Below are positions 16,847 through 63,000 of a stretch of 64,000 bases of DNA, piece after piece. The notes under the pieces were generated by a model. The model worked only from the letters and a program-made list of their open reading frames with translations. It ran no database searches and was not told the origin of the DNA. The position numbers and the translations under genes are program-made. The stretch spans positions 742,371-806,370 of the forward strand of contig NW_002060959.1 in NCBI RefSeq assembly GCF_000150275.1. The letters run 5' to 3'. Origin of the DNA: Trichoplax adhaerens. Taxonomy: Eukaryota > Animalia > Placozoa. Numbering within the stretch: the first letter of the stretch is position 1; each line of letters starts with the position of its first letter.

Positions 16847-19030
16847 TTAATGATGTGGTTGACTTTTTCGCCATTTTGTACGTCGGTTCTGGAACCAAAC
16901 CTTAACTTGATTTTCAGTCATCCCCAGCACGAAAGCTAAGCGTGATCGTTCTGGTCCCACCACGTACCTAGTTTTTTGAAAAACGTTTTCCAAGGCCAGT
17001 ATTTGCCTACCCGAAAATGTAGGTCGGGAATGTTTATCTGACGAATCAGGAGAGGAGTTGCTACGTATTTCATTTCCGGTACCTACTAAAAATGCAATAT
17101 TATATTAGTATACTCAGCAAGCCAAGAACCTTCACATTACGCGTAAAAGAGAAGAACTGTAGAATTATTCATTATCGTATACTCCAAATGGATTATGACT
17201 GATTCATCACCGTTTGCATTGTCTATTTTTAGCTAAGTGCATATAATTTTTAAGTGACCTGTCTTAATCAATCATGTTATGCCGTTGATGGCCTCTCGAT
17301 ACTGCTAATCATGGCATAAAATGACCAATGATACCGACCGATATTATAGCGAGGCACGGTAAAAAAGACATCATTTTCTTAAAATGTTGGGAAAGTTGAT
17401 GTATGTCTGTGGCGCACCTGCCGGCATGGGGACGATTTTTATCGCAGACACTTCTTTACTGGTTTATGGTTTACTTGACCGACCGTAGAAATACGAATAT
17501 GTTTCATTATGTACTGAATGACTGAGTACCATAAAAGTTTGAATCCTTAAGGCGACCAATTCTAAGCTTTCAATACGATGTTTGTGTGGCTACCGCTACT
17601 AAAACTATTCTATCTAATTACTGACCATAAAAGTGCCCATCAGTATTTTAATGTAGGTCTTTATACTAGTAAATCTATTACAGGCAACAATCCTAATTTT
17701 TTATAACAAATTTCGCGTAATAGGGACTAAGGATACTCTCTTTTTAGTTAATCAAGATACTAATAGCTTAAGCAAGTTCATATAGCAGTTGTGGATAACT
17801 TGACCATGACACTAGGTTCGAAATTTATATCTTATCGTTTTACTTCTAATTTAGGTCAACAACATCAATAGATACACCCAATATTCCTACCATATTGTAT
17901 GTAGGTAAGGTATCTACTAGTTTATATGGGTTCAATTTCAATCTGAGAATAACCAGGAAATTTTACTGTTGCTAAAGCAACTACCTTCTATTAGGCTTTG
18001 ATCGAACGTCAAACTAAAGTTGATTCACTTAATTGAATTGTCAATTTTTTAATATGTTTAATGAAAATAAAGTTGTACCAATAGGGTGCGAATCGATTTC
18101 GTATAGTTACCAGAGGACATAGAAACTATTTTTATAAAGGCGTCATGATCGGATGATCTATGGATTTATCCATTAATTATTGTATTAGAAATAAAAGCTA
18201 TCAATTTATTGAAGCGAAAGAAAAATGATTTCTTATTTATTACAGCTTAACGAATTTCAGGTATACGTACTACTATTCTGGTAGTATCAACTGAATACTT
18301 TCAATCATGATTCTTGATTTATGCACGAGACCGTAGATCAGCTTATCACTTCTCAAGACCTTAATTAATTTTTTAAGTTAAGTTTTTCGATCATAGAAGA
18401 TGGCTTCGTAGCCAACCAATTTTACTCTGTAATTGGTGCTATATTTCACCTTCATTATAGTTTCCAAAATGGAATAATGGCATCAAACAAAACAAGAAAA
18501 ATGACGGTGCAGTTTTGAAAGTCATTTTCTAGGTTTACTATTCTATCTGATATTTCATTCAATGGAACAAAAATTAGCTGATTGAATTAACAAAATATTC
18601 AAAAAAATGTCTACCTACCTAAAGTAGACTGTTGAGATGGCAGCCAGTAATTAACATTTCGATGTTTACTTGTCGTGTAGATATCGTTTAATGCCACTGG
18701 ATCACAGTTGGAATCGATAGAATTAGGAGAAATTTCATCGCGATCATAGTGATGACACAGATTAGAGTTACTATTATATAAGTAGTTATTATTGCAGCTG
18801 TTCGATTTACTACCACTGTTGCTACTAGTACAAGTAGTATTTATGTTCTGATTCAAGAAAGATTTATCATATCGGGTAAAATGCGATGATGGTAGAGCTA
18901 AGTCATAGGGTGGGATTAAGAAATGATTACTGACATCATTGCTGTATGAGTATGGAACGATGGAATTGGATGCAGCTGCCATAATTAAATTATTATTATA
19001 ACGCGAATAAGATGATGGAGTAGTAAGCAT
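16847..19030 (-). CDS. NK6: NK6 (Nkx6/HGTX-family) homeobox transcription factor, 2 exons, ~200 aa
   Basis: Exon 1 is 19030-18619 (Ser/Asn-rich, ends ..[12 protein letters not shown]|gtaggt). Exon 2 is 17037-16847 and encodes [60 protein letters not shown]. KHxRPTFSGxQI, GPER, [21 protein letters not shown] is diagnostic of NK6. The homeobox exon is absent from the supplied ORF track. Confidence 0.93.
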
Positions 19031-24516: not shown

Positions 24517-25073
24517 TGTCACAAAACAGTTTTGCAACAAGATAACGCAATATACGATCAATAAGTCAATTCCTTGAACCACGTATCAAGGAACGATATC
24601 TGCACTATCACAAACACTTTTGCTCTACTAGCAGACTACACAAAGACTTAAACGCCTCGTATTTTACGTTAAACACTAAGTTAGACAATTCTTCTTTATT
24701 TCACGATATACTGCATTTATATACTATTCCTCAATAGTTCACGAGTCATAGTTAATACAATTAACATTAGAATCATTTACTGAATTAGATATTAATTTTA
24801 GCTACTGCTCCCTTAATGCAGACAACAGTATTTACGAACATAGACATGTAATGAAAGTAAATTACAATCACAATGATTCGAACTGTAAGCAGATGATTTG
24901 CATTCCCTAACTATTATAATTTCAGTATGTGTATAAGTGTCACTGTCATAAAAAGTCAGTGCTATATTAAAATACAGTATATCCAAATTAGAAGTTAACT
25001 AAATAAGGATAGTCTAACAGAATTATCCTAACATAGTTATTTCTACTGTAATACAGTATTTAACACTGTAACA
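24517..25073 (-). mobile_element. Solo LTR, family 1, copy a (557 bp)
   Basis: Plus strand reads TGTCAC...GTAACA, flanked by the 5-bp TSD AGAGT (24512-24516 and 25074-25078). Reverse complement of the copies at 36955 and 37977, with an internal deletion of about 70 bp. Confidence 0.88.
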
Positions 25074-26800: not shown

Positions 26801-27750
26801 TCAAATCTTGGTTACTGACGAGAATGGAGCTTGGCTAGTTTGCGTATTAAAAGTAGCATTGCTGCCTTCTTCTTCGCTAACAGTTATATTGGGATTATTT
26901 GAAGATGACGACGTGGACGAATCATAGTCGCCGAGAGCACTACTGCCGTTCAAATTATTTAAAGTTACCCTTTTCTCTTTGGCTCCTAAATAGAATGATA
27001 AATCGGTTGTATATGTGAGATAGACAAAATGTCTGATTATTCAGTACGTCTTTCATAAAAATCGATTGTTAATCTCTATTCTAAAGTAGTAAACCGTTCT
27101 CAACCGTCAGGATTAATAGTATTCTTCAACAGACATACAACACTAAGAAGCTGTGATTGCTTAAATAAAAGAAACTTTAAAGTGATAAAGATAATGATTT
27201 ATTTGTATTAAACTGTATGTCATCGTTAGTAAAGTTCTTTCAATCTAACTGCTTATCATATAGACTAATATCTAAGTAATGCAAATAATTATCTCTTAAA
27301 TAGCTCGAAACGATGATCTATTGTATATCTAGTCTAGATAAAAAGTACTTTACTACTTTGTAGCCCTTATTACTTAACCATTTAAGGCATGACAAGACGC
27401 TTTATGCTGCCAATGTAACAAACTACAATGCTCTGATAACTTACGGACTGCTAACAAATGGATCACTATCAAAAATTTTGATTAGCTATTCTTATAAGTC
27501 AGTATAGATTGCTATTATCATTAATATGTGGTTGAATATGTCAACCGGTAATTTTACTCACGTTTATTTTGAAACCATGTGCTAACTTGTTTGCTAGATA
27601 CATTAATTTTACTAGCAATAGCGATACCCCTTTTGCCAGGACAATATGGATTGAGCGTGAATTCATGGCCTAAAGCATTCAGTTGATCAGGCGTAAAACT
27701 AATCCGACGCAGCTTGGAGCCATAACGGCGCCGACCTGACCTTCTTTTTC
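26801..27750 (-). CDS. Divergent ANTP/NKL-like homeobox gene: homeobox exon and last exon
   Basis: Exon 27750-27562 (acceptor catgtAG, donor C|gtgagt) joins exon 26985-26801 (acceptor tatttAG, TGA stop) in frame. Homeodomain: SKLRRISFTPDQLNALGHEFTLNPYCPGKRGIAIASKINVSSKQVSTWFQNKRAKEKRVT, with R5, F8, L16, F20, Y25, W48, F49, Q50, N51, R53. Confidence 0.88.
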
Positions 27751-30700
27751 CTACATGAGAATGATGTAAAATAATGCCTAATATTAATATTGTCTTCTTT
27801 CTTAGTAAATGTTGCAATGTCTAGAGCCAAGGCTAGAAATCAACGCAATGTAGATCTTTCAAGAAAAAATGTAAAACACATTGCACACTGAAGAATTAAG
27901 AACGTTCTTTATCAAAATCGCCCTTACTAGTAACTCAACTGCCGGAGAAAATTCTAGTTTGTATTAACTGAATAAAGATTGGTTGGAGGTCAAGATCAAT
28001 CAGCTAAACAAATTTTAAAAGTGTGTCAAATCTTCATCGATAATACTTCAAGTCTTTTCCTTGTCATTTATAATACTGAACTTAAAACACTTTAATTGCA
28101 TTATTCTGAGATTTTGAAAACTAATGATCATTGTAATCAATTTAATCAAACTGCATACATGTAACTATGCAGCGATAACGCATACAATTTAACAAAAAAT
28201 AAGAGTAAACTACTAGCGTTTTGCAATTCAAACTAGAAAGGTGTTTCACTCAGTAAGGGAAAAAATTTAAGCATTCGATAAAACTTAATAATGGTTAACG
28301 GGAAATAATGGAGTTAGATAATGAACCTGAACTGTTTGTCTGTTCATATATCAAGGCCCCAAATCTATATTCATAAGGCTTTTATCTCGTAAAATGCCAG
28401 TGCATTGAACCAAATTTGTAAAACTTTAGTATGAATTCGGTAAATTAGTATTAACAGTTCAGGATAAATCTAATTTGCATACGTCAGACATTTTTCAAGT
28501 CAAATCAGAGCGCTCTCTAACTTTTTACCATACTAAACGTGTCAATCTCAATGACTAAAAAGATCTTCATACTATATACGTAGACGAGCAATCTTTCAAT
28601 AATTTGGCAATGCCTAATCAATATATTTGCAATAGTTCAATTTTGTCATTTGAAATAATTGCATGATAATAACATCTGTAAACGTCTACCATCAGATATT
28701 TCTACAATCCATTCTACTATCCATATCGAATTATATTGTAACTGTACTGTTTGCATCCTATTTAACAAAACAATATCTATATTTAGCCTAAAGTAATACC
28801 ACTTACTAGGAAGAAATTCAAGTTAATTTACAGGCAATAATGTTAACTTCAATCGACTCTAATGGAAATATATCAAAAATTGCTGACGTATCCCTACAGC
28901 CTATAGTAGTACATTACAAGACGTAATTGGTGAAATTGTTATGGAAGTTGTTGGAATATATCTGATCTATTTTATTGCAGTAATCCGTCAATGTTTTGAT
29001 GTAAATACCAATGATCTAAATTATTTTTTTCGTTAGTGAAAAAATAAAGGCGAAAATTTAACTCAACCAAAGATAAAATCATGATAAAATGTGGGTTTGA
29101 TATCGTTTTTAATAAGTAGAAGGTAATCTTGATGGACAGAATTTTCAGCGATACGAACGAAAAGTATGCTTGCGAATACATCGCTAAGCGTAATGTTGAT
29201 TAAGACATTTTGTACTCTACAGGAAATAATCGTCTTATTGCATTCATCAGACCCATGTTACCCATCGGAGTAAATAAGCACATTAAAGTACTCTTTAAGG
29301 TACTCCATAAACAGCCAATTTAATAGGGTATTAAAACGGATCTTTCCTGTTTCTCTGTTATTTAATGATTATATCATATTCGTAAATCAAAACTTTTCAA
29401 TCAATACATAGTGAAATATTGAGTAAACAACCTTATGCCAATATAATTGGATAGCTGAATTATACCAATATTTATGTCCTTATAAATATTTTCGACTTTT
29501 AAAGAGTGTATATTTATTAATAAGATTGGTCAGTAAAATTCAATAGACGGCTGTCAATAAGAGATAATTTAAAATTACTAATATTCTACCAACTATCACT
29601 CTGTGCAAACTTGTCTTAGATTTCAAATTTAGAAATGTCCTAGAGCTTGGTAATACCGTATCCCTAATTAAGGTAGCTCTATCTATTTATATATGCTTAT
29701 CAGAATAGGCTTTAGTAACACGTCAGCATCGCTCTCACACTAATGGATTCTACCTTATATTTATAGTTGATGATTGTTCAATCCAAATAGATGAATTTTT
29801 TTATCCATTAATACTTCTGGATAATTCAATATTTTGATATATTATAGTTTATTATTTCAAAATGGATGTATATCCAATGCTATCTATGGCACAGATTTAT
29901 ACTAATACAAATATAGTCAATTTTCAACTTTCGGATAAAATAAAAATTAATGGCAAGTTGTTTAAGCTTAAAATGACTTTTTCTCTGGATTATTTTTCTT
30001 TGACACATACAATGATTTAGTCAACCCAACTTGCCTCCACTACTAACAGAAGGAAGAGTAGAAGAGTAGAAATTAGATTTTTCGGATTATCAAAGGGAGA
30101 AAAATTTTTGCAAAATGAACTAAAAACATGCTAGGATGTGATTTGAAAATGACCAAGGTCTTAATTTAGGGTAGTACAGCTAATTTCTATATCATTGCTG
30201 TATCAAATAGCATGGTCATAAAAAGAAACGTAAATAGCATCAAAATGCTGGGAAACTAAAACTCTATAGTTTTAAAGTTAGTAACAGTCAATTTCATCAA
30301 TTATATTGATATTGCCCGATAATATTAAATTCTACTAACTTGACAATTAAAACTATCATTGCCAAGTCAGCAGCAATTAATAGTAACATCACGAATAGTC
30401 ACTAAATAAAATTACCCATCATTGAATCTTCCCAATTTAATACATTAATTGTCATGTCATAATTAGGATATACTGAACAGGCAGCATGATTCCTTCATAC
30501 TGTTTTGTTCAGAATAAACTACCTAATTACCTTAAACTACGATACTTTATTACAAAGCAAAGCAGTGAACTAATTTTATCAATTAATTATCTATAGTTGT
30601 TATCGCAGTACCAATTTTAAGAGCACCATTATTACTTCTCATTTGTAAATTATGTCTCTTACCAATCAAAGATTCACTATCATCTTTTCAAAAACCCAGT

Positions 30701-30934
30701 AATTTAAATTTTTGGTGAAAGTTATAAGCACTGTTCGTAATCTAGCATTGATTTGAAACCGTCTCTATTTTAAAATGAAATATTTTTTCGGATTCCAGTG
30801 ATTCTAGAAGCTGTTAAGCTCCCAAATTCTCAACAAATAAAAATAAGCATTCCCTTCAATTATTTCATCTGTTATTTGATTAAATGCAATTGATTTTAGC
30901 GTCATTAGGAATGCACTACTAACTAGTCGAAATA

Positions 30935-31261
30935 TTAATTTGCTGATTGAGATACAGTATCTTCTTGCAGATTGAATTGATTGTCAATTTGCTGATAGCA
31001 TGATTGCGGTGGTTGTGGCTGCAGTTGGCTTAATTCGTTATGATTTAGCATTAAATTAGCCGGCGTATTAGTTGAAGGCGTCGAAATAGGCAAATGTGGT
31101 CGATAATAATAATAATAGAATGGCGACGATGGATATGATGGATAGTATTGCGATGGAAAGACGGGAGGGGGTACAGTGTTGGGATAATATGAATTAGGTT
31201 GTGGACAATGAACAATCGGAAAAACTAAGCGTTGATGTTGCAATGAACTATCGTCATCCAT
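30935..31261 (-). CDS. Pro/Tyr/Gln-rich probable first coding exon of the divergent homeobox gene
   Basis: ATG-initiated 108-codon ORF with activation-domain-like composition (PPPVFPSQYYPSYPSSPFYYYYYRP), on the same strand 3.2 kb upstream of the homeobox exon. The only evident donor (ACT|gtatct) is phase 0 while the homeobox acceptor is phase 1, so the junction is unresolved. Confidence 0.6.
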   Translation of the reverse strand: MDDDSSLQHQRLVFPIVHCPQPNSYYPNTVPPPVFPSQYYPSYPSSPFYYYYYRPHLPISTPSTNTPANLMLNHNELSQLQPQPPQSCYQQIDNQFNLQEDTVSQSAN

Positions 31262-34200
31262 TTCAATTTAAGATTCGTATTCGATGATAAAGTAGCAAGA
31301 AGTATTAATACAACCAAAGGAATGATGCTCTAACGGAAAAAATTGTAGTCAGGTAAATTTTGTACTCGAGGCGTACGATAGGACTAACAACTACCTGGAA
31401 CTGAAATTAATTTAGTAGAAGTAGCGATTATAAAGTAGAGTCAATTTGTTTTTATTACAATTTGTACGATTGCATCAAAAGATGAATAGTATGAAAATAA
31501 TAATCAACAAGAATGGATAAAAATTTCTTTCTCTAAATGCTTTAAATAACAACAGTATAATAATCAACAGCCTTAGTATCCAATTAAGGTTGAATATTGT
31601 CTACAACGGTGCTTATATAGCTATGTATAAACAATTAAAATTCTAATTTACCTTATAAGCAAATACACATCTAAGTGACCCCTGCTGCTATCACATACGA
31701 CCACCTAATTAAGAATAATTGAAAAAATTAAATATTCAATCAATGGAATTAGATCGAATGTAATTAGTTATGAAACTATAGTCTGAAAATTATAATTAGA
31801 ATATAAGCAATTATTGGATATCATAAAAGATCAATGCATTATTATATTATTCTCACCTATATTGGATGATAATTAATGATTGCGATATGCTACAATTTAT
31901 CGTCCATACCGGTACTTGTTATTTTTTTCTCACTACCAAAGTAATTCCGAGTTGCATCTTCGATATCAATCACAACCAATATGTCTATATATTGAATTGG
32001 GTTAAATTAAGATAATGGTGAATGGAAACATGTCGATAATTGAGTCAAAATAATAAATAATTTAGAATCAGCTAGATTAATTAGGAGTGAATATATCAAA
32101 AACATAAAACTAATGATAATCAATAATAGACTTAAAAATGCGGATGGAAGATATTAGTTATGAAGCAATTTTTATTTTTTCTCAATTTTCTTGATATTGA
32201 GTGGTTATGCCAAGCTCTTTCCTCCTCTAATCTGTAAATTTGAAATGCTATCAATTTAAGCTAGAAGAAATTTTTGCAGTGATATATAGCCAAATGATAA
32301 TATAAAAGATGACTCAGTTATAAACCATTGCTGTTGTCTAATTTAATGTAAGAAAATTCAAATAAAAATGATATAGAATATATTCCTTTATTGCAAATAG
32401 GCTTCATACATTAATCCTTTTAGTCTGAATCAGTATCTGGTCTGTTGCCGTTATTGTTGACAACCATAAATTCTCACATTTGTCCTTCTAAAATATGCTT
32501 GGTTTACATAACAAATGAGAATGGATAGAAAATACCGTAATAGGAGCAATTCTTTAGAATTCTATAGCATCTCCCAAAATAAATTAACTGTTAATTTAGG
32601 ACTTGAATATTCAATTCAAACGATAAGTTGAATGATGTAATTGATGACACAAATCCTATTTCTATTATCCAATTATTTGCAATTACTTCTGATATAATAC
32701 TAATTTAGATTAATGTCATTCTATGTTGTGTATTAATCTAGCCGTCAGTACACCTTATTTTAGCAGTGGTGACTTATTTTTATTTGGCGTAGTCATTGAT
32801 GTCATCATGGATATGAACAACATGAGCGAGTTTTTTTATCGAAGGTTGCCACTATGCTAAATCAATTAGTAAAGTATATTGTTGAAGATAAAGGTTTGGT
32901 ACTTTAATGGGGATAATTTTAGATTATCTCAATTTATCCTCGAAATAACAAATACATATTTAATTTCTCTATTATTTTTCAATGAGTCATACGATATTCG
33001 ATAGCGCTTACAATCACCTAATTAATCCAATTTATGTAATCCTTCCAATATCTACAAATTAAATATATCAAATCACATTCTATTAGTTTTTAATTCGATT
33101 CTAATGTGAACGACGTTGACATTTCTCATTGACGTTTCAAATATTAAGGACAATATTTTAATGAACTCGTACTAAAGTAAAACACTTTTTAAAAAGATGA
33201 TAGCAACTAAAAATGACATTTTAGGAAATCTTCACTGTTTTTATTCAGTTCTGCTTTCTATCGGCTTCCTAAAGATATAACATTTAGCTCCTTTAGTTAT
33301 TATTTATCTGAAACGATGGACGATATTTGAACCTATTTTTCTATATCTTTTAACAGCTATATGAAGCAGCGATTTCCTCAGCGGTGAAATAAACATATTT
33401 ATTGAATCGGGTACAGTTGATATGTATTTTCATATTATTGTCTTATACGGCTATAAAAAAACGCTTATCTTACTATCTTATCTTGTTTAATACTATCTTA
33501 TCTACAATATTGGCATTCTCTTAAACAATAATAACAATGGCAATAATAGCAAATATCAATGACGTTAATAAGGGCAGGAGAAAATGACAGTCCGCTTTAA
33601 CTGATGTAGATAAACAAAATCTTCATCGCATGCGCAGCCTAATTGGTAATTTCTTACGCAATCTCTGTTAAGAATGGAATTCTGGTTATATAATCATGCT
33701 GAACCCATCTGCTTAAATCCATTTGGTATGATCTATTTGTTAAAAATTACGTTCAAAAAGTAACTGAAGACAAAGATTAGTCATGTAGAATAGAATTGAC
33801 GATGAATAACTTTGTGAATTGGCTGAGCGATTGGGCATTGTGATGACATCAATTCTAGCGTTGTTCACAGGCTCTCGCTGAGTGTGAGAGTAGTTAATGA
33901 AGGGCAGATGTTGACACCAAGGCCTTACTATTTGCGGTAGTGGATTGATAATGTATGGCATAGAAGGACCAGATCGGTGAATTTAATCTCAGTAGTCACG
34001 ATCAAGAAACAATAGAAAGGTTATTAATTATTTCCATAGTCACATTAAACACATGAGTAACGTTTGAAAGGTAGATTCAGGTTGGGAAGGAATACTGGTG
34101 AAAAATAGTCTATCGTCTTACCAAAATGAAAACTTTTACTCTCTCAATTACATTAATCCTTACTCAAGCGCAAATACAACGTTATCAATGTATACGTATT

Positions 34201-60048: not shown

Positions 60049-63000
60049 ATGACAGAAGATAGTCAGGAGAGAAAGCAAAATGCCTTTTCCATCAGCAATT
60101 TACTTTCCAAGAATCCAGCATGTCATAATGATGCTCATGTAGCTAAAGACAATTATCCAAGTCGTGATGGTAGTGAATCACCTGGAGATGAAGATAGTTC
60201 AGATTCTTGTTCCGTTGTATCATCCGATGGATCACCATCACAAGAAAATCAACTTGAAGGTAAATAATGTTTCATAAATTCAATTGACCAAATATTTATT
60301 TTTCGTCGTCATTTGAGCTATTTTTTCAAGTTGATACTTTATTTGATGAAGTGTTATCGCATTTGATCCTCGATTGCATACTCTCTTTGATAGCTAAAAA
60401 TTTAGTTCAATATCCATTATTGAATTTCGTTGACAAAGAAAGTAGCAGATTATTGCTGCTGTTATTAGTACTGAATCTTAGTTTATACTTCAACTAACAG
60501 TAATAATAGCAATTCTTTCCGTTTCCATATTGCTCGTATTTGCTAATTCTCTCTCAACTGACTGACAATCTACCCTATTGAATTAATCGACTAGAAGGTC
60601 GTCGACTATAATAGCATTAGGCTATTCTTGATTCTGATTACTAAAGACATCTGCATTATTTCCAATTAGGTCATGAATATTAATAATGTTGCCATATTAA
60701 TCAGTCGTTAAAACTGCGTTTGTGTTAGAATTAAAGACTGAAACAATAGCTTTGACTTGATGACACAAGTTTCGAGTATTTCACCATATTCTGTCATTAA
60801 GATAATCCACTTAGTAAATTACTATTTTTATTATTTTAATCTTAGATTAACGTCATCGTTGTGTCGATAATTTACTTTATCCAATTTTATTTAATTAATT
60901 ATTTGCAGGAAGACCATATTTTCTCCGTAACATAATTCAGTTAATTTGCGGATCGAATAATTAGCATAGGATTTCAATCTTATTCGATCATTTCAATCTG
61001 AAATCAATCACTTCTGACCAGCATCAGTAGAAAATGGTAATCATCATCGATGATTTGATCTAGAGTTATCGGAAATAGTTAAATATTAAATAAGAGTCGA
61101 AATTGTAATAGCATTTGCCAATTTATCCTAACTCTTACCCAACTACGGTAATAAAAACTGTACAGGGTAGAATCAATCGACCAAGATGACAAATATAATT
61201 TTTATTTATCAAATAAATTAAAATCTATCAAACCGCAAACAGTAAAGAATTATCCGCAGCTTTCTCGATTATTCAAACTAAGATATTTTATTTACCACTG
61301 AAATAATCCTAATCCATGCGAAATGGATGTAAAAGTATTGTTCAACCACAATAAAAGCTTAGTGGAGTGTAACTTGGAATGAAATTGATTCTTGCGCAAT
61401 TATACTCTATATTACTTTCATCGCCTTTGTGATACTAACGAATCTTAAATTCATGCTATATGACCACCGCGATTAAACGTTCAATGTCCTATAATACAGA
61501 TTAATGTTAATAACTCGTCAATTCGCATAAATTTTGAATCAGGCCTCATCTATCTTTACTATCAATTCGCTGATTGATTAGATTAGATTTTGTTTATAAA
61601 AATCTTAATGACCAAGTATTGATATGATGCGTACAATTTTATCCTTTCTTCGACTTGAAACAAAAGTTGATTACAATGAATAAATTATTTTAAATAGTTT
61701 GCTGATTAGATCTTATTTTGATTTTCTTTTTACTTTTAATTTTTCTACTTCGATACCGTTTACGACAGGAATCGGAAATATTTACTTAACTTTGATTTTT
61801 GATTACTAACGATAACATCTGTTCAATTATCTGAATTAACTGCGACATTATGATTTTATTTTACGGCAAAAATTTCCAGAATCTCTTATTGATTATTTGT
61901 TTATCCTGGAAACGATATTATAAGATTGAGAAAGAAAATTTATTTATAGATTCTAATGATAGGCCGAATACACTATACAGTATCAGTATGAACACAGAGT
62001 CAGAAAATAGGACTTATGAGTCTCTTAGCGTACAAATATAAATTAGATATCTTATATATATATATACAGTATAGTGCTATAACATTTCATGAAATCTTTA
62101 TAACGTGCGCAAACCAGAAAAAAAATAGGGAGGCGTAGTTTCTCTGCAGTACAATTGTTTCTTATTCCCAAATTTTCTTGCCTGAAAAAAATTTCGATAC
62201 GATTGTCAATATCGTCATCATTCCTGAGTTTTGGCGCTATATTGTTCAATTATATCGATCTGATCTAAGCCTTTGACAATATTTTGTAATGGCTGAAATT
62301 GGCGATGAAATGCTGTATTTATTCAGTAATGGATAAATCTTTTTTCAACGCAATACCTTCGCTAAGGCAGTATCTGTGAACGCTTTTAGTCTATAGCAAG
62401 TCTTAAAATGTTTAGTTCAATATGCGTAGGAATGACTATGACCTTTAATGCCGTGATGATTATTACATCAACACTAATTATATACAGATATAGCTAAGCT
62501 TACCAACATTATTCCAATGGGCTAAAATACTTTCTTTAAATTTAACCATTAGGTAAACCTAATGGCCAAGGCCATCATCGCCATCATCGTCATCATGATC
62601 ATTCTTCTCAATCTAAAAAATTAAAAAAGAAAAATAAGAAAAAGAAGACCAGAACTGTCTTTTCACGAACTCAAGTTATTCACTTAGAAGCAACATTTGA
62701 TCAAAAGAAATATTTATCATCAGCTGAACGCGCTGGTTTAGCTAATTTGTTATGCTTAACGGAACAACAAGTTAAAATTTGGTTTCAAAATCGCCGTAAT
62801 AAATTGAAACGTCAATTAGCCGAGATGAAAGCAAGTAATATGATGACATTAAGAGCACAAGGTTTCAATAATGGTGTATCACCAGTCTATTATCAAGAAA
62901 GAACGCCAACTGGTATTAGCATGTCCAATGCTGAAATTATTCGAACACTACCTCAGGCAGCATTACCGCATCCATCACCAATCCATTATCCTCAGGCTCA

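Follow-up and report, generated by a model that had tools for sequence, protein, structure and literature searches.

The Trichoplax homeobox catalogue of 2008 includes a homeodomain encoded on scaffold 17 at 770088-769333 (accession EU700385), flagged there as intron-split (Table S1 of PMC2515636) and named "Hox/ext.Hox-related" by Schierwater et al. (2008). The same homeodomain is called TaHoxlx in the supplements of Ryan et al. (2010; PMC2959044). In the trees available from the latter study, TaHoxlx has a very long branch (0.74-1.73) and is placed, depending on the tree, as sister to the Gsx clade, by Vax, or by Emx/Vax/Not at a bootstrap of 7; in those available trees that include Lbx, Lbx and TaHoxlx are not paired. 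A negative residue 19 and a positive residue 30 define HOX-like polarity, and proline 26 serves as a criterion against the ANTP class (both bioRxiv 10.1101/2023.03.14.532566). For HOXL2, Ryan et al. (2010) give LE[AGKNR]E as the signature of positions 16-19. Literature searches with accessions, gene-model identifiers and names found no papers or expression data on TaHoxlx beyond those of 2008 and 2010.

We analysed a stretch of 64,000 nucleotides of T. adhaerens scaffold 17 (742371-806370; the window). The gene at 26801-31261 is the published TaHoxlx, very probably an orphan homeobox gene of the ANTP class that is placozoan-wide, leans to HOXL and has lost part of exon 1 in this assembly. Its 60 homeodomain residues are identical to those of EU700385, and the published interval corresponds to window positions 27718-26963 (offset verified separately); homeodomain sequence, scaffold coordinates and intra-homeobox intron all match, and the two are the same gene. 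The initial annotation had considered the gene possibly cryptic and hidden from simple ORF searches by its intron. TaHoxlx is, on the contrary, already known and has been catalogued since 2008: it was recovered by tblastn in that year, it is deposited (EU700385; H1 records XP_002116774.1, EDV20833.1 and UniProt B3S8U6 in a cluster look-up; gene model TRIADDRAFT_60748), and it is detected at 49.2 bits when the genome is scanned in six frames with Pfam. The Trichoplax sp. H2 record is RDD43517.1, with the automatic product name "Homeobox protein Ht-En". For H1, the published and GenBank entries are limited to the homeodomain or to exons 2-3 (125 aa), whereas the 263-aa, three-exon form has been seen in H2 alone. 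The present analysis adds an ortholog from a distantly related placozoan, as well as a 289-bp deletion at the end of exon 1 in the reference assembly (Table 1).

Table 1. Features of the TaHoxlx locus and neighbouring homeodomains (window positions)
Feature	Position	Strand	Description
NK6 homeodomain	16865-17035		
Exon 3	26801..26985	-	Homeodomain residues 53-60 (RAKEKRVT), Ser/Asn-rich acidic tail, TGA at 26803-26801
Intron 2	26986..27561	-	GT..AG, phase 1 in homeodomain codon 53; donor C/GTGAGT at 27562/27561, acceptor ttag/GA at 26986/26985
Exon 2	27562..27750	-	Homeodomain residues 1-52, preceded by the basic linker KRRSGRRRYG and followed by the first base of codon 53
Homeodomain (60 aa)	27718-27562 + 26985-26963	-	Spliced from exons 2 and 3
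Former intron 1	27751..30934	-	No matching donor left here; acceptor tag/GA at 27751/27750
TAA stop	30935..30937	-	Arises at the deletion junction 30937/30936
Exon 1, surviving part	30938..31261	-	108-aa ORF from ATG, Pro/Tyr-rich N-terminal region, 3' end missing
Three conserved non-coding blocks	32506-32450, 32062-32025, 31770-31707	-	450-1250 bp upstream of the ATG
Hmx homeodomain	62642-62812		

The locus was compared with H2 and with a divergent placozoan used as outgroup (Logan SRR30664517, contigs L002 and L003), and searches used single exons or the database proteins P0002 (the GenBank H1 model) and P0151 (the 263-aa H2 protein). The spliced 60-aa homeodomain that had been proposed on the minus strand was confirmed by the translations and by Pfam PF00046. 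Direct reading of donor and acceptor likewise confirmed the phase-1 intron in codon 53, and the last exon is open up to its TGA. The claim of intact splice sites holds for the homeodomain intron but not for exon 1, which runs into the TAA stop at the 289-bp deletion and has no donor. PF00046 matched exon 2 alone (46.2 bits, E 4.1e-12), the full H2 protein (60.4 bits, E 1.4e-16) and the outgroup exon (49.7 bits), all three over the curated 22.9-bit threshold. The homeodomain has 60 residues without insertion (no TALE-type 3-residue insertion), and the core residues L16, F20, W48, F49, N51 and R53 are present, as they are in H2 and the outgroup. It was the sole Pfam domain of the 263-aa H2 protein, with no LIM, POU, PAX, SIX or CUT domain. 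Exon 3 matched residues 66-125 of P0002 at 100%, the exon 1 ORF was 99% identical to residues 1-108 of RDD43517.1, and former intron 1 aligned with the H2 locus (L001 10615-13799) at 98.7% identity. Intron 2 has the same position and phase in H2 and the outgroup; in H1 it carries 169 bp (27539-27371) that are absent from H2.

The 289 bp present in H2 (L001 10326-10614) and in the outgroup (L002) are absent from the H1 assembly, where the flanks of the deletion are contiguous both in the window and across the whole assembly. The lost segment comprises the C/GTAAGT donor of exon 1 together with the 94 nt that end this exon. In H2, this piece codes for 31 further residues followed by the phase-1 C/GTAAGT donor, which fits the phase-1 acceptor of exon 2; L002 retains both. 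The H2 exon junctions lie at L001 10419/13800 and 13988/14400. No copy of the 31 residues was found in any of the six frames of the window, in agreement with a deletion, and the 289-bp sequence was not found elsewhere in the H1 assembly. Neither the 108-aa H1-type nor the 160-aa H2-type exon 1 ORF gave a match in exact look-ups, and the outgroup ORF was the sole match in a word search with the H1 exon 1 ORF. The three-way comparison indicates that the 289-bp loss in H1 is a derived deletion. As the donor was removed, the splice between exons 1 and 2 is broken in this assembly, and the allele shown here cannot yield the full-length protein via the ancestral splice. The GenBank H1 model reaches only 125 aa because the reference copy lacks the end of exon 1. 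The H1 assembly merges the haplotypes of a polymorphic diploid into one unphased consensus (PMC6057997), and the deletion may lie on just one of the two H1 haplotypes. The lost end of exon 1 matters for probe design, knock-downs and expression analyses based on the H1 reference.

Given these data, there is perhaps one chance in a few that TaHoxlx, or at any rate its assembled allele, is a young pseudogene in H1, its sole ATG-bearing exon having been uncoupled from the homeodomain exons. The deletion both takes out the donor and makes the TAA stop, exons 2 and 3 lack an in-frame Met, P0002 starts at a non-ATG codon (GTA) slightly upstream of exon 2, and the missing sequence has no second location in the assembly. 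H1 and H2 differ by four non-synonymous substitutions and one synonymous substitution, including homeodomain M21T, which is H1-derived when polarised with the outgroup; this looks neutral, but the counts are very small, too low to demonstrate relaxed selection. Moreover, both exons of the homeodomain are wholly intact, as are their splice sites, and the other haplotype of this polymorphic diploid may be intact too. A weak in-frame alternative also exists on paper, in which a phase-0 donor in exon 1 (ACT/GTATCT) might be joined to an acceptor at 27797/27796 (aaag/AAG).

Beyond H1, TaHoxlx is conserved. All three of its exons are present on L002 and L003, and their splice phases are unchanged. 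Exon 2 shares 82% amino-acid identity with the outgroup, with acceptor and donor phases kept, and dN was 0.088 while dS was saturated (24 synonymous vs. 11 non-synonymous codon differences). Exon 1 is 62% identical to the outgroup ORF (approximately 75-80% across the first 75 residues), with a dN/dS of about 0.21-0.27. By contrast with the exons, introns of the window and the outgroup did not align. Because the distant ortholog keeps the gene structure, with low dN and saturated dS, these comparisons indicate that TaHoxlx is a placozoan-wide gene under purifying selection and not a relic or a recent duplicate. This conservation speaks against "recent duplication and rapid divergence", and the earlier suggestion of a fast-evolving relic or a recently born gene is contradicted by this ortholog and by the purifying selection. 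Several placozoan orthologs could also shorten the long branch that has blocked classification of TaHoxlx.

Regarding family affinity, G17, C26, G31, S46, T47, K52 and A54 read as initially reported; all of them except position 17 are common to the distant placozoan ortholog, in which position 17 is A and P24 is replaced by R. All three orthologs have Cys at position 26 and hence no proline there. E19 and R30 are found in H1, H2 and the outgroup, so TaHoxlx shows the negative 19/positive 30 pattern of HOXL/extended-Hox homeodomains; the pair recurs in TaGsx and TaMnx, in contrast to the E30 of NK6, Hmx and Hex. The HOXL2 signature was not found at positions 16-19 (LGHE in Trichoplax, LAKE in the outgroup). 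The best single-domain matches in PDB were GSX2 (36 bits) and EN2 (30 bits), followed by Ftz, HoxB1, Scr and Pdx1, and matches in PDB at E <= 1e-3 numbered 50, mostly Engrailed, Hox and ParaHox homeodomains. Among 1.84 billion representatives, the best single-homeodomain proteins were Gsx1 types (46-47% identity) and an engrailed E60-like protein (43%). The closest Trichoplax paralogs were Not (21/49 identical, top-scoring) and Gsx (22/49); Not, Gsx, NK2c, Mnx and Dlx were all closer to TaHoxlx than Hex (14/45), Hmx (14/49) and NK6 (16/49), the lowest identities among the ANTP paralogs. In our own tree, built with Trichoplax homeodomains only, TaHoxlx shares a polytomy with Gsx, Mnx, Not and NK6 and belongs to neither the PRD nor the LIM/POU clade. 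AU tests rejected none of the groupings with Hex (p 0.46), NK6 (p 0.48), the NKL clade (p 0.26), LIM/POU (p 0.19), Gsx, Not or Hmx (p 0.19-0.48 overall). Any family assignment of TaHoxlx is weak; judged by its residues and matches, it leans towards HOXL/extended-Hox (Gsx, Not and Engrailed-like features) despite its location among NK6, Hmx and Hex.

With Gsx (Trox-2 in Trichoplax; GSX1/2 in vertebrates), a ParaHox gene of the HOXL group that gave the best single-domain match in PDB and in the protein search (45-47% identity), TaHoxlx shares E19/R30, Q50 and an "LSEKQV"-like start of helix 3. However, true Gsx homeodomains are far closer to each other, G17, C26-P27-G28, G31, S46, T47 and K52 of TaHoxlx are non-Gsx residues, and Trichoplax Gsx lies on another scaffold with a homeobox that, unlike that of TaHoxlx, has no intron. 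TaNot has the FTPDQL motif, G28 and E19 in common with TaHoxlx, but just 21 of the 49 residues are identical and its homeobox is also intronless. Membership of a divergent TaHoxlx in the Engrailed family, as the automatic H2 name implies, is highly improbable. The end of helix 3 (WFQNKRAK) is the same as in Engrailed, which also has E19/R30 (bioRxiv 10.1101/2023.03.14.532566), and a fish engrailed-like protein was the sole non-placozoan match when the full H2 protein was used in a word-based search (41% identity, E 5.9e-5). Yet GSX2 outscores EN2 in the PDB search, and the published trees that are available place TaHoxlx elsewhere (PMC2959044). The Engrailed C-terminal signature PF10525 did not match the 263-aa protein in Pfam, and neither this search nor the H2-outgroup alignment revealed the EH5 flanking motif; the conserved N-terminal region in that alignment contains no EH1, EH2, EH3-like or tryptophan motif.

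An origin as a fast-evolving NK-cluster relic of Lbx or Hhex type, suggested by the initial annotation, or as a duplicate of a cluster neighbour, seems unlikely, though somewhat less so than the Engrailed assignment. T47 and A54 also occur in Trichoplax Hex (QVKTWFQNRRAKWRR), its place is between NK6 and Hmx on the scaffold that also carries Hex, and the AU tests are compatible with clades of Hex, NK6 and NKL. Against this, identity to the three NK neighbours is low, and the HOX-like E19/R30 stands against their E30 (TaHex has a K19/E30 polarity). HHEX and LBX chains were absent from the 50 matches in PDB (E <= 1e-3); the nearest sequences were of Gsx, Engrailed, Hox and Not types, although the AU test did not reject a Hex grouping. 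The comparison of intron positions, put forward as a check, does not favour a Hex origin either: in Hex, NK2a, NK2b, Dbx/Hlx and NK-related1 alike, the intron falls at 50/51 in phase 0, whereas that of TaHoxlx is in phase 1 in codon 53. K52-R53-A54-K55 is equally the pattern of Engrailed and TaLim3/4 and is thus not diagnostic for Lbx/Hhex. What stands is a real, divergent gene without an assignable family within the NK6-Hmx-Hex linkage group, in agreement with Schierwater et al. (2008), who called it "highly derived".

The homeodomain positions of both neighbours confirmed the location of this HOXL-leaning gene between NK6 and Hmx; Hex lies approximately 58 kb further on in the same scaffold. 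A selected, placozoan-wide HOX-like orphan at this place might be a witness of an old HOXL-NKL linkage (the ANTP mega-cluster), with the laboratory reference strain, if homozygous for the 289-bp deletion in exon 1, as a naturally occurring truncated or null mutant, but we regard this combined reading as rather doubtful.

In its intact form (H2, 263 aa, three exons), the protein comprises a conserved Pro/Tyr-rich N-terminal exon of 139 residues, followed by a basic linker, a Q50 homeodomain and a Ser/Asn-rich acidic tail. TaHoxlx would most likely be a transcription factor with sequence-specific binding. Its DNA-contacting core (R5, Y25, W48, F49, Q50, N51 and R53) is kept and a TAAT-type site is therefore to be expected, while T47 and the missing R31 are likely to alter specificity or affinity. 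Its conservation and the evidence-based MAKER model of H2 (PMC6057997) suggest that TaHoxlx is expressed. Upstream of the ATG, the three non-coding blocks are collinear with L002 at 80-92% identity, the sole parts of the locus besides the exons that align with it, and may represent promoter or 5'UTR elements.

The minus-strand homeobox gene between NK6 and Hmx is already known. Its 60 residues are identical to 'Hox/ext.Hox-related' in Table S1 of Schierwater et al. 2008 (PMC2515636), listed on scaffold 17 at 770088-769333 (GenBank EU700385) with the remarks that an intron splits the homeobox and that the prediction came from GenomeScan/Genscan. The window covers scaffold 17 (G000:C1398) from 742371 to 806370, and with this offset the listed coordinates become window 27718-26963, with the same splice. 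The same table places NK6 at 759408-759229, NK5/Hmx at 805009-805188 and Hex at 828801-827558 of scaffold 17, and the gene was counted among three 'highly derived' ANTP genes. Ryan et al. 2010 included it in alignments and trees as 'TaHoxlx' (PMC2959044), the name used here. GenBank and UniProt hold the Trichoplax adhaerens (H1) protein (TRIADDRAFT_60748, XP_002116774.1, EDV20833.1, B3S8U6; 125 aa), and the Trichoplax sp. H2 protein (RDD43517.1, 263 aa) carries the automatic name 'Homeobox protein Ht-En'. TaHoxlx also emerges from an ordinary six-frame Pfam search of the genome (49.2 bits, rank 30 of 35 homeodomain matches). The gene is therefore not cryptic and its intron does not conceal it, contrary to the initial annotation; that interpretation was partly right, but of a known gene. 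This analysis adds the full gene structure, a distant placozoan ortholog and an exon-1 deletion in the reference assembly.

The homeodomain itself had been read correctly, far above chance level: exon 2 alone matched the Pfam Homeodomain model with E 4.1e-12 (46.2 bits), and residues G17, C26, G31, S46, T47, K52 and A54 were all confirmed in the translation. The window is AT-rich (~30% G+C). Exons were searched separately by reference, or database proteins were used as queries. The donor and acceptor positions define a phase-1 intron within codon 53.

Features of TaHoxlx and NK6 in the window, and amino-acid identity of the divergent placozoan (outgroup) to H2
Feature	Window position	Strand	Basis or identity
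Exon 1, first 108 codons surviving in H1	31261-30938	minus	99% identity to H2
Premature TAA ending the H1 exon-1 frame	30937-30935	minus	reading frame
Exon 2, basic linker and homeodomain residues 1-52	27750-27562	minus	translation
Intron-2 donor, C/GTGAGT	27562/27561	minus	sequence
Intron-2 acceptor, ttag/GA	26986/26985	minus	sequence
Final exon, open as far as TGA	26803-26801 (stop)	minus	translation
NK6	16859-17038		
Exon 1, outgroup vs H2			58%; first 75 residues ~75-80%
Exon 2, outgroup vs H2			82%
Exon 3 (assembled part only), outgroup vs H2			46%

Placed on the homologous H2 locus (L001), the H2 protein falls into three exons. Exon 1 runs for 139 codons and one further base up to C/GTAAGT, a donor in the phase required by the exon-2 acceptor; exons 2 and 3 are arranged as in the window. 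The H1 exon-1 frame stops at a TAA because 289 bp of the H2 sequence (L001 10326-10614) are cleanly absent between window 30937 and 30936. This gap removes the donor together with the final 94 nt of exon 1 and 195 nt of the intron. No copy of the missing piece was found elsewhere in the whole H1 assembly. The divergent placozoan retains the homologous 31 residues and an A/GTAAGT donor, and the deletion is therefore the derived state, carried by H1. In exons 2 and 3 there is no in-frame Met, and the 125-aa GenBank model begins at a non-ATG codon. Given these features and the deletion, the assembled H1 allele cannot yield the ancestral full-length protein. H1 is a polymorphic diploid assembled as an unphased consensus, and one allele is often common to H1 and H2 (PMC6057997); the deletion, known from this consensus, may be heterozygous. 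A further 169 bp within intron 2 (window 27371-27539) are present in H1 and missing from H2, so that, with the 289-bp deletion, this 4.5-kb gene has two large indels between genomes ~99% identical.

The divergent placozoan was reached through a word-based query with the H2 protein, which matched a 160-aa Logan ORF (P0176). All three exons lie on its contigs L002 and L003 (SRR30664517 and SRR30664516, respectively; 30.6% G+C), and their splice phases are identical, that of the codon-53 intron (phase 1) among them. The introns have lost alignment. The dN/dS check proposed in the initial annotation did not give the value near 1 named there as refuting, with ~0.21-0.27 in exon 1; in exon 2, where dS is saturated, dN was 0.088 (24 synonymous and 11 non-synonymous codon differences). 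An ortholog of the same structure with low dN indicates, at sequence level, that TaHoxlx has a long history in Placozoa and is maintained by purifying selection, which argues against a recent duplication. Between H1 and H2 there are 4 non-synonymous changes and 1 synonymous change, counts too small for interpretation; among them, the homeodomain replacement M21T is the derived state in H1. The reported loss of the E17-R52 and R31-E42 salt bridges is real in the sequence (G/A17, K52, G31, S42) and is conserved in the outgroup, and is therefore a stable family feature rather than decay. Besides the exons, only three short upstream blocks align to the outgroup (window 32506-32450, 32062-32025 and 31770-31707). 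These non-coding blocks (31707-32506, minus strand) are 80-92% identical and collinear with L002, while the other flanks are unalignable; lying upstream of the ATG, they may belong to the promoter or the 5'UTR.

The initial annotation had suggested an Lbx/Hhex-like relic of the NK cluster. Among 1.84 billion representatives, only TaHoxlx's own cluster exceeded 50% identity, and the gene appears to have no close relative outside Placozoa. The best single-homeodomain proteins were Gsx1 types (46-47%), a Not-like millipede protein (44%) and an engrailed E60-like protein (43%); the rest of the top of the list were multi-homeodomain proteins with scores summed over domains. Solved structures ranked GSX2 (36 bits) and EN2 (30 bits) ahead of Ftz, HoxB1, Scr, Pdx1 and Eve, and no HHEX or LBX chain occurred among the 50 matches. 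The nearest Trichoplax homeodomains were Not (21/49 identical) and Gsx (22/49), with fewer identities in the cluster neighbours NK6 (16/49), Hmx (14/49) and Hex (14/45). The Lbx/Hhex lead thus found no support. Engrailed shares the K52-R53-A54-K55 pattern with TaHoxlx, but so does TaLim3/4, and the pattern is therefore not diagnostic; Pfam detected no Engrailed signature, and no domain beyond the homeodomain, in the 263-aa H2 protein.

An E19/R30-type polarity has been proposed as diagnostic of HOX-like genes (2023 preprint, bioRxiv 10.1101/2023.03.14.532566). TaHoxlx has this pair, as do TaGsx and TaMnx, and it is kept in the outgroup, whereas NK6, Hmx and Hex all carry E30. Intron position points the same way, because the phase-1 codon-53 intron differs from the phase-0 intron between codons 50/51 (TGG TTT CAG/GTAAG) of Trichoplax Hex, NK2a, NK2b, Dbx/Hlx and NK-related1 (G000:C1414 and C1398; L039-L043). 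The latter may be a synapomorphy of these NKL genes. An intron in codon 53, although unusual, is also on record in the ctenophore ANTP gene MlANTP71. In the trees of Ryan et al. that include TaHoxlx, its branch is very long (0.74-1.73) and its position shifts: sister to the Gsx clade, beside Vax, or by Emx/Vax/Not with bootstrap 7 (one tree each; PMC2959044). In our maximum-likelihood tree of Trichoplax homeodomains and the three TaHoxlx orthologs, the orthologs grouped together with 100/100 support on a long stem. Their clade shared a polytomy with Gsx, Mnx, Not and NK6 and lay outside the supported NKL, PRD and LIM/POU clades. AU tests rejected none of the groupings with Hex, NKL, Gsx, Not, NK6, Hmx or LIM/POU (p 0.19-0.48). 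TaHoxlx would thus be an orphan of the ANTP class leaning towards HOXL/extended-Hox, the same statement as that published in 2008.

Core and main DNA-contact residues are intact (R5, Y25, W48, F49, Q50, N51, R53), and TaHoxlx is a putative sequence-specific transcription factor that would bind a TAAT-type core via Q50 and N51. T47 and the lost R31 phosphate contact probably shift its preference or affinity. The conserved Pro/Tyr-rich N-terminal region, which has no known domain, may be a regulatory or partner-binding part; the C-terminal tail is Ser-rich and acidic.

Kamm et al. 2018 (PMC6057997) reported dN/dS >1.5 between H1 and H2 for the neighbouring NK6, with divergent alleles within each lineage, and allelic divergence may be unusually high at the NK6/TaHoxlx locus. 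Two solo-LTR-like elements with termini TGTTACAG...TGTGACA lie 1.7-3 kb downstream of TaHoxlx, one in H1 only (window 24517-25073) and one in H2 only (L001 17097-18027). A perfect 5-bp target-site duplication flanks each insertion (ACTCT in H1, CCGTA in H2), and the other genome has the corresponding empty site; members of the family have therefore transposed since H1 and H2 diverged. Elsewhere in the genome, a homeobox next to Mnx (G000:C1399:1319836-1319988) is likewise known already, matching 'NK-related2' in coordinates and sequence (scaffold 16, 1319833-1320012; EU700383; PMC2515636).
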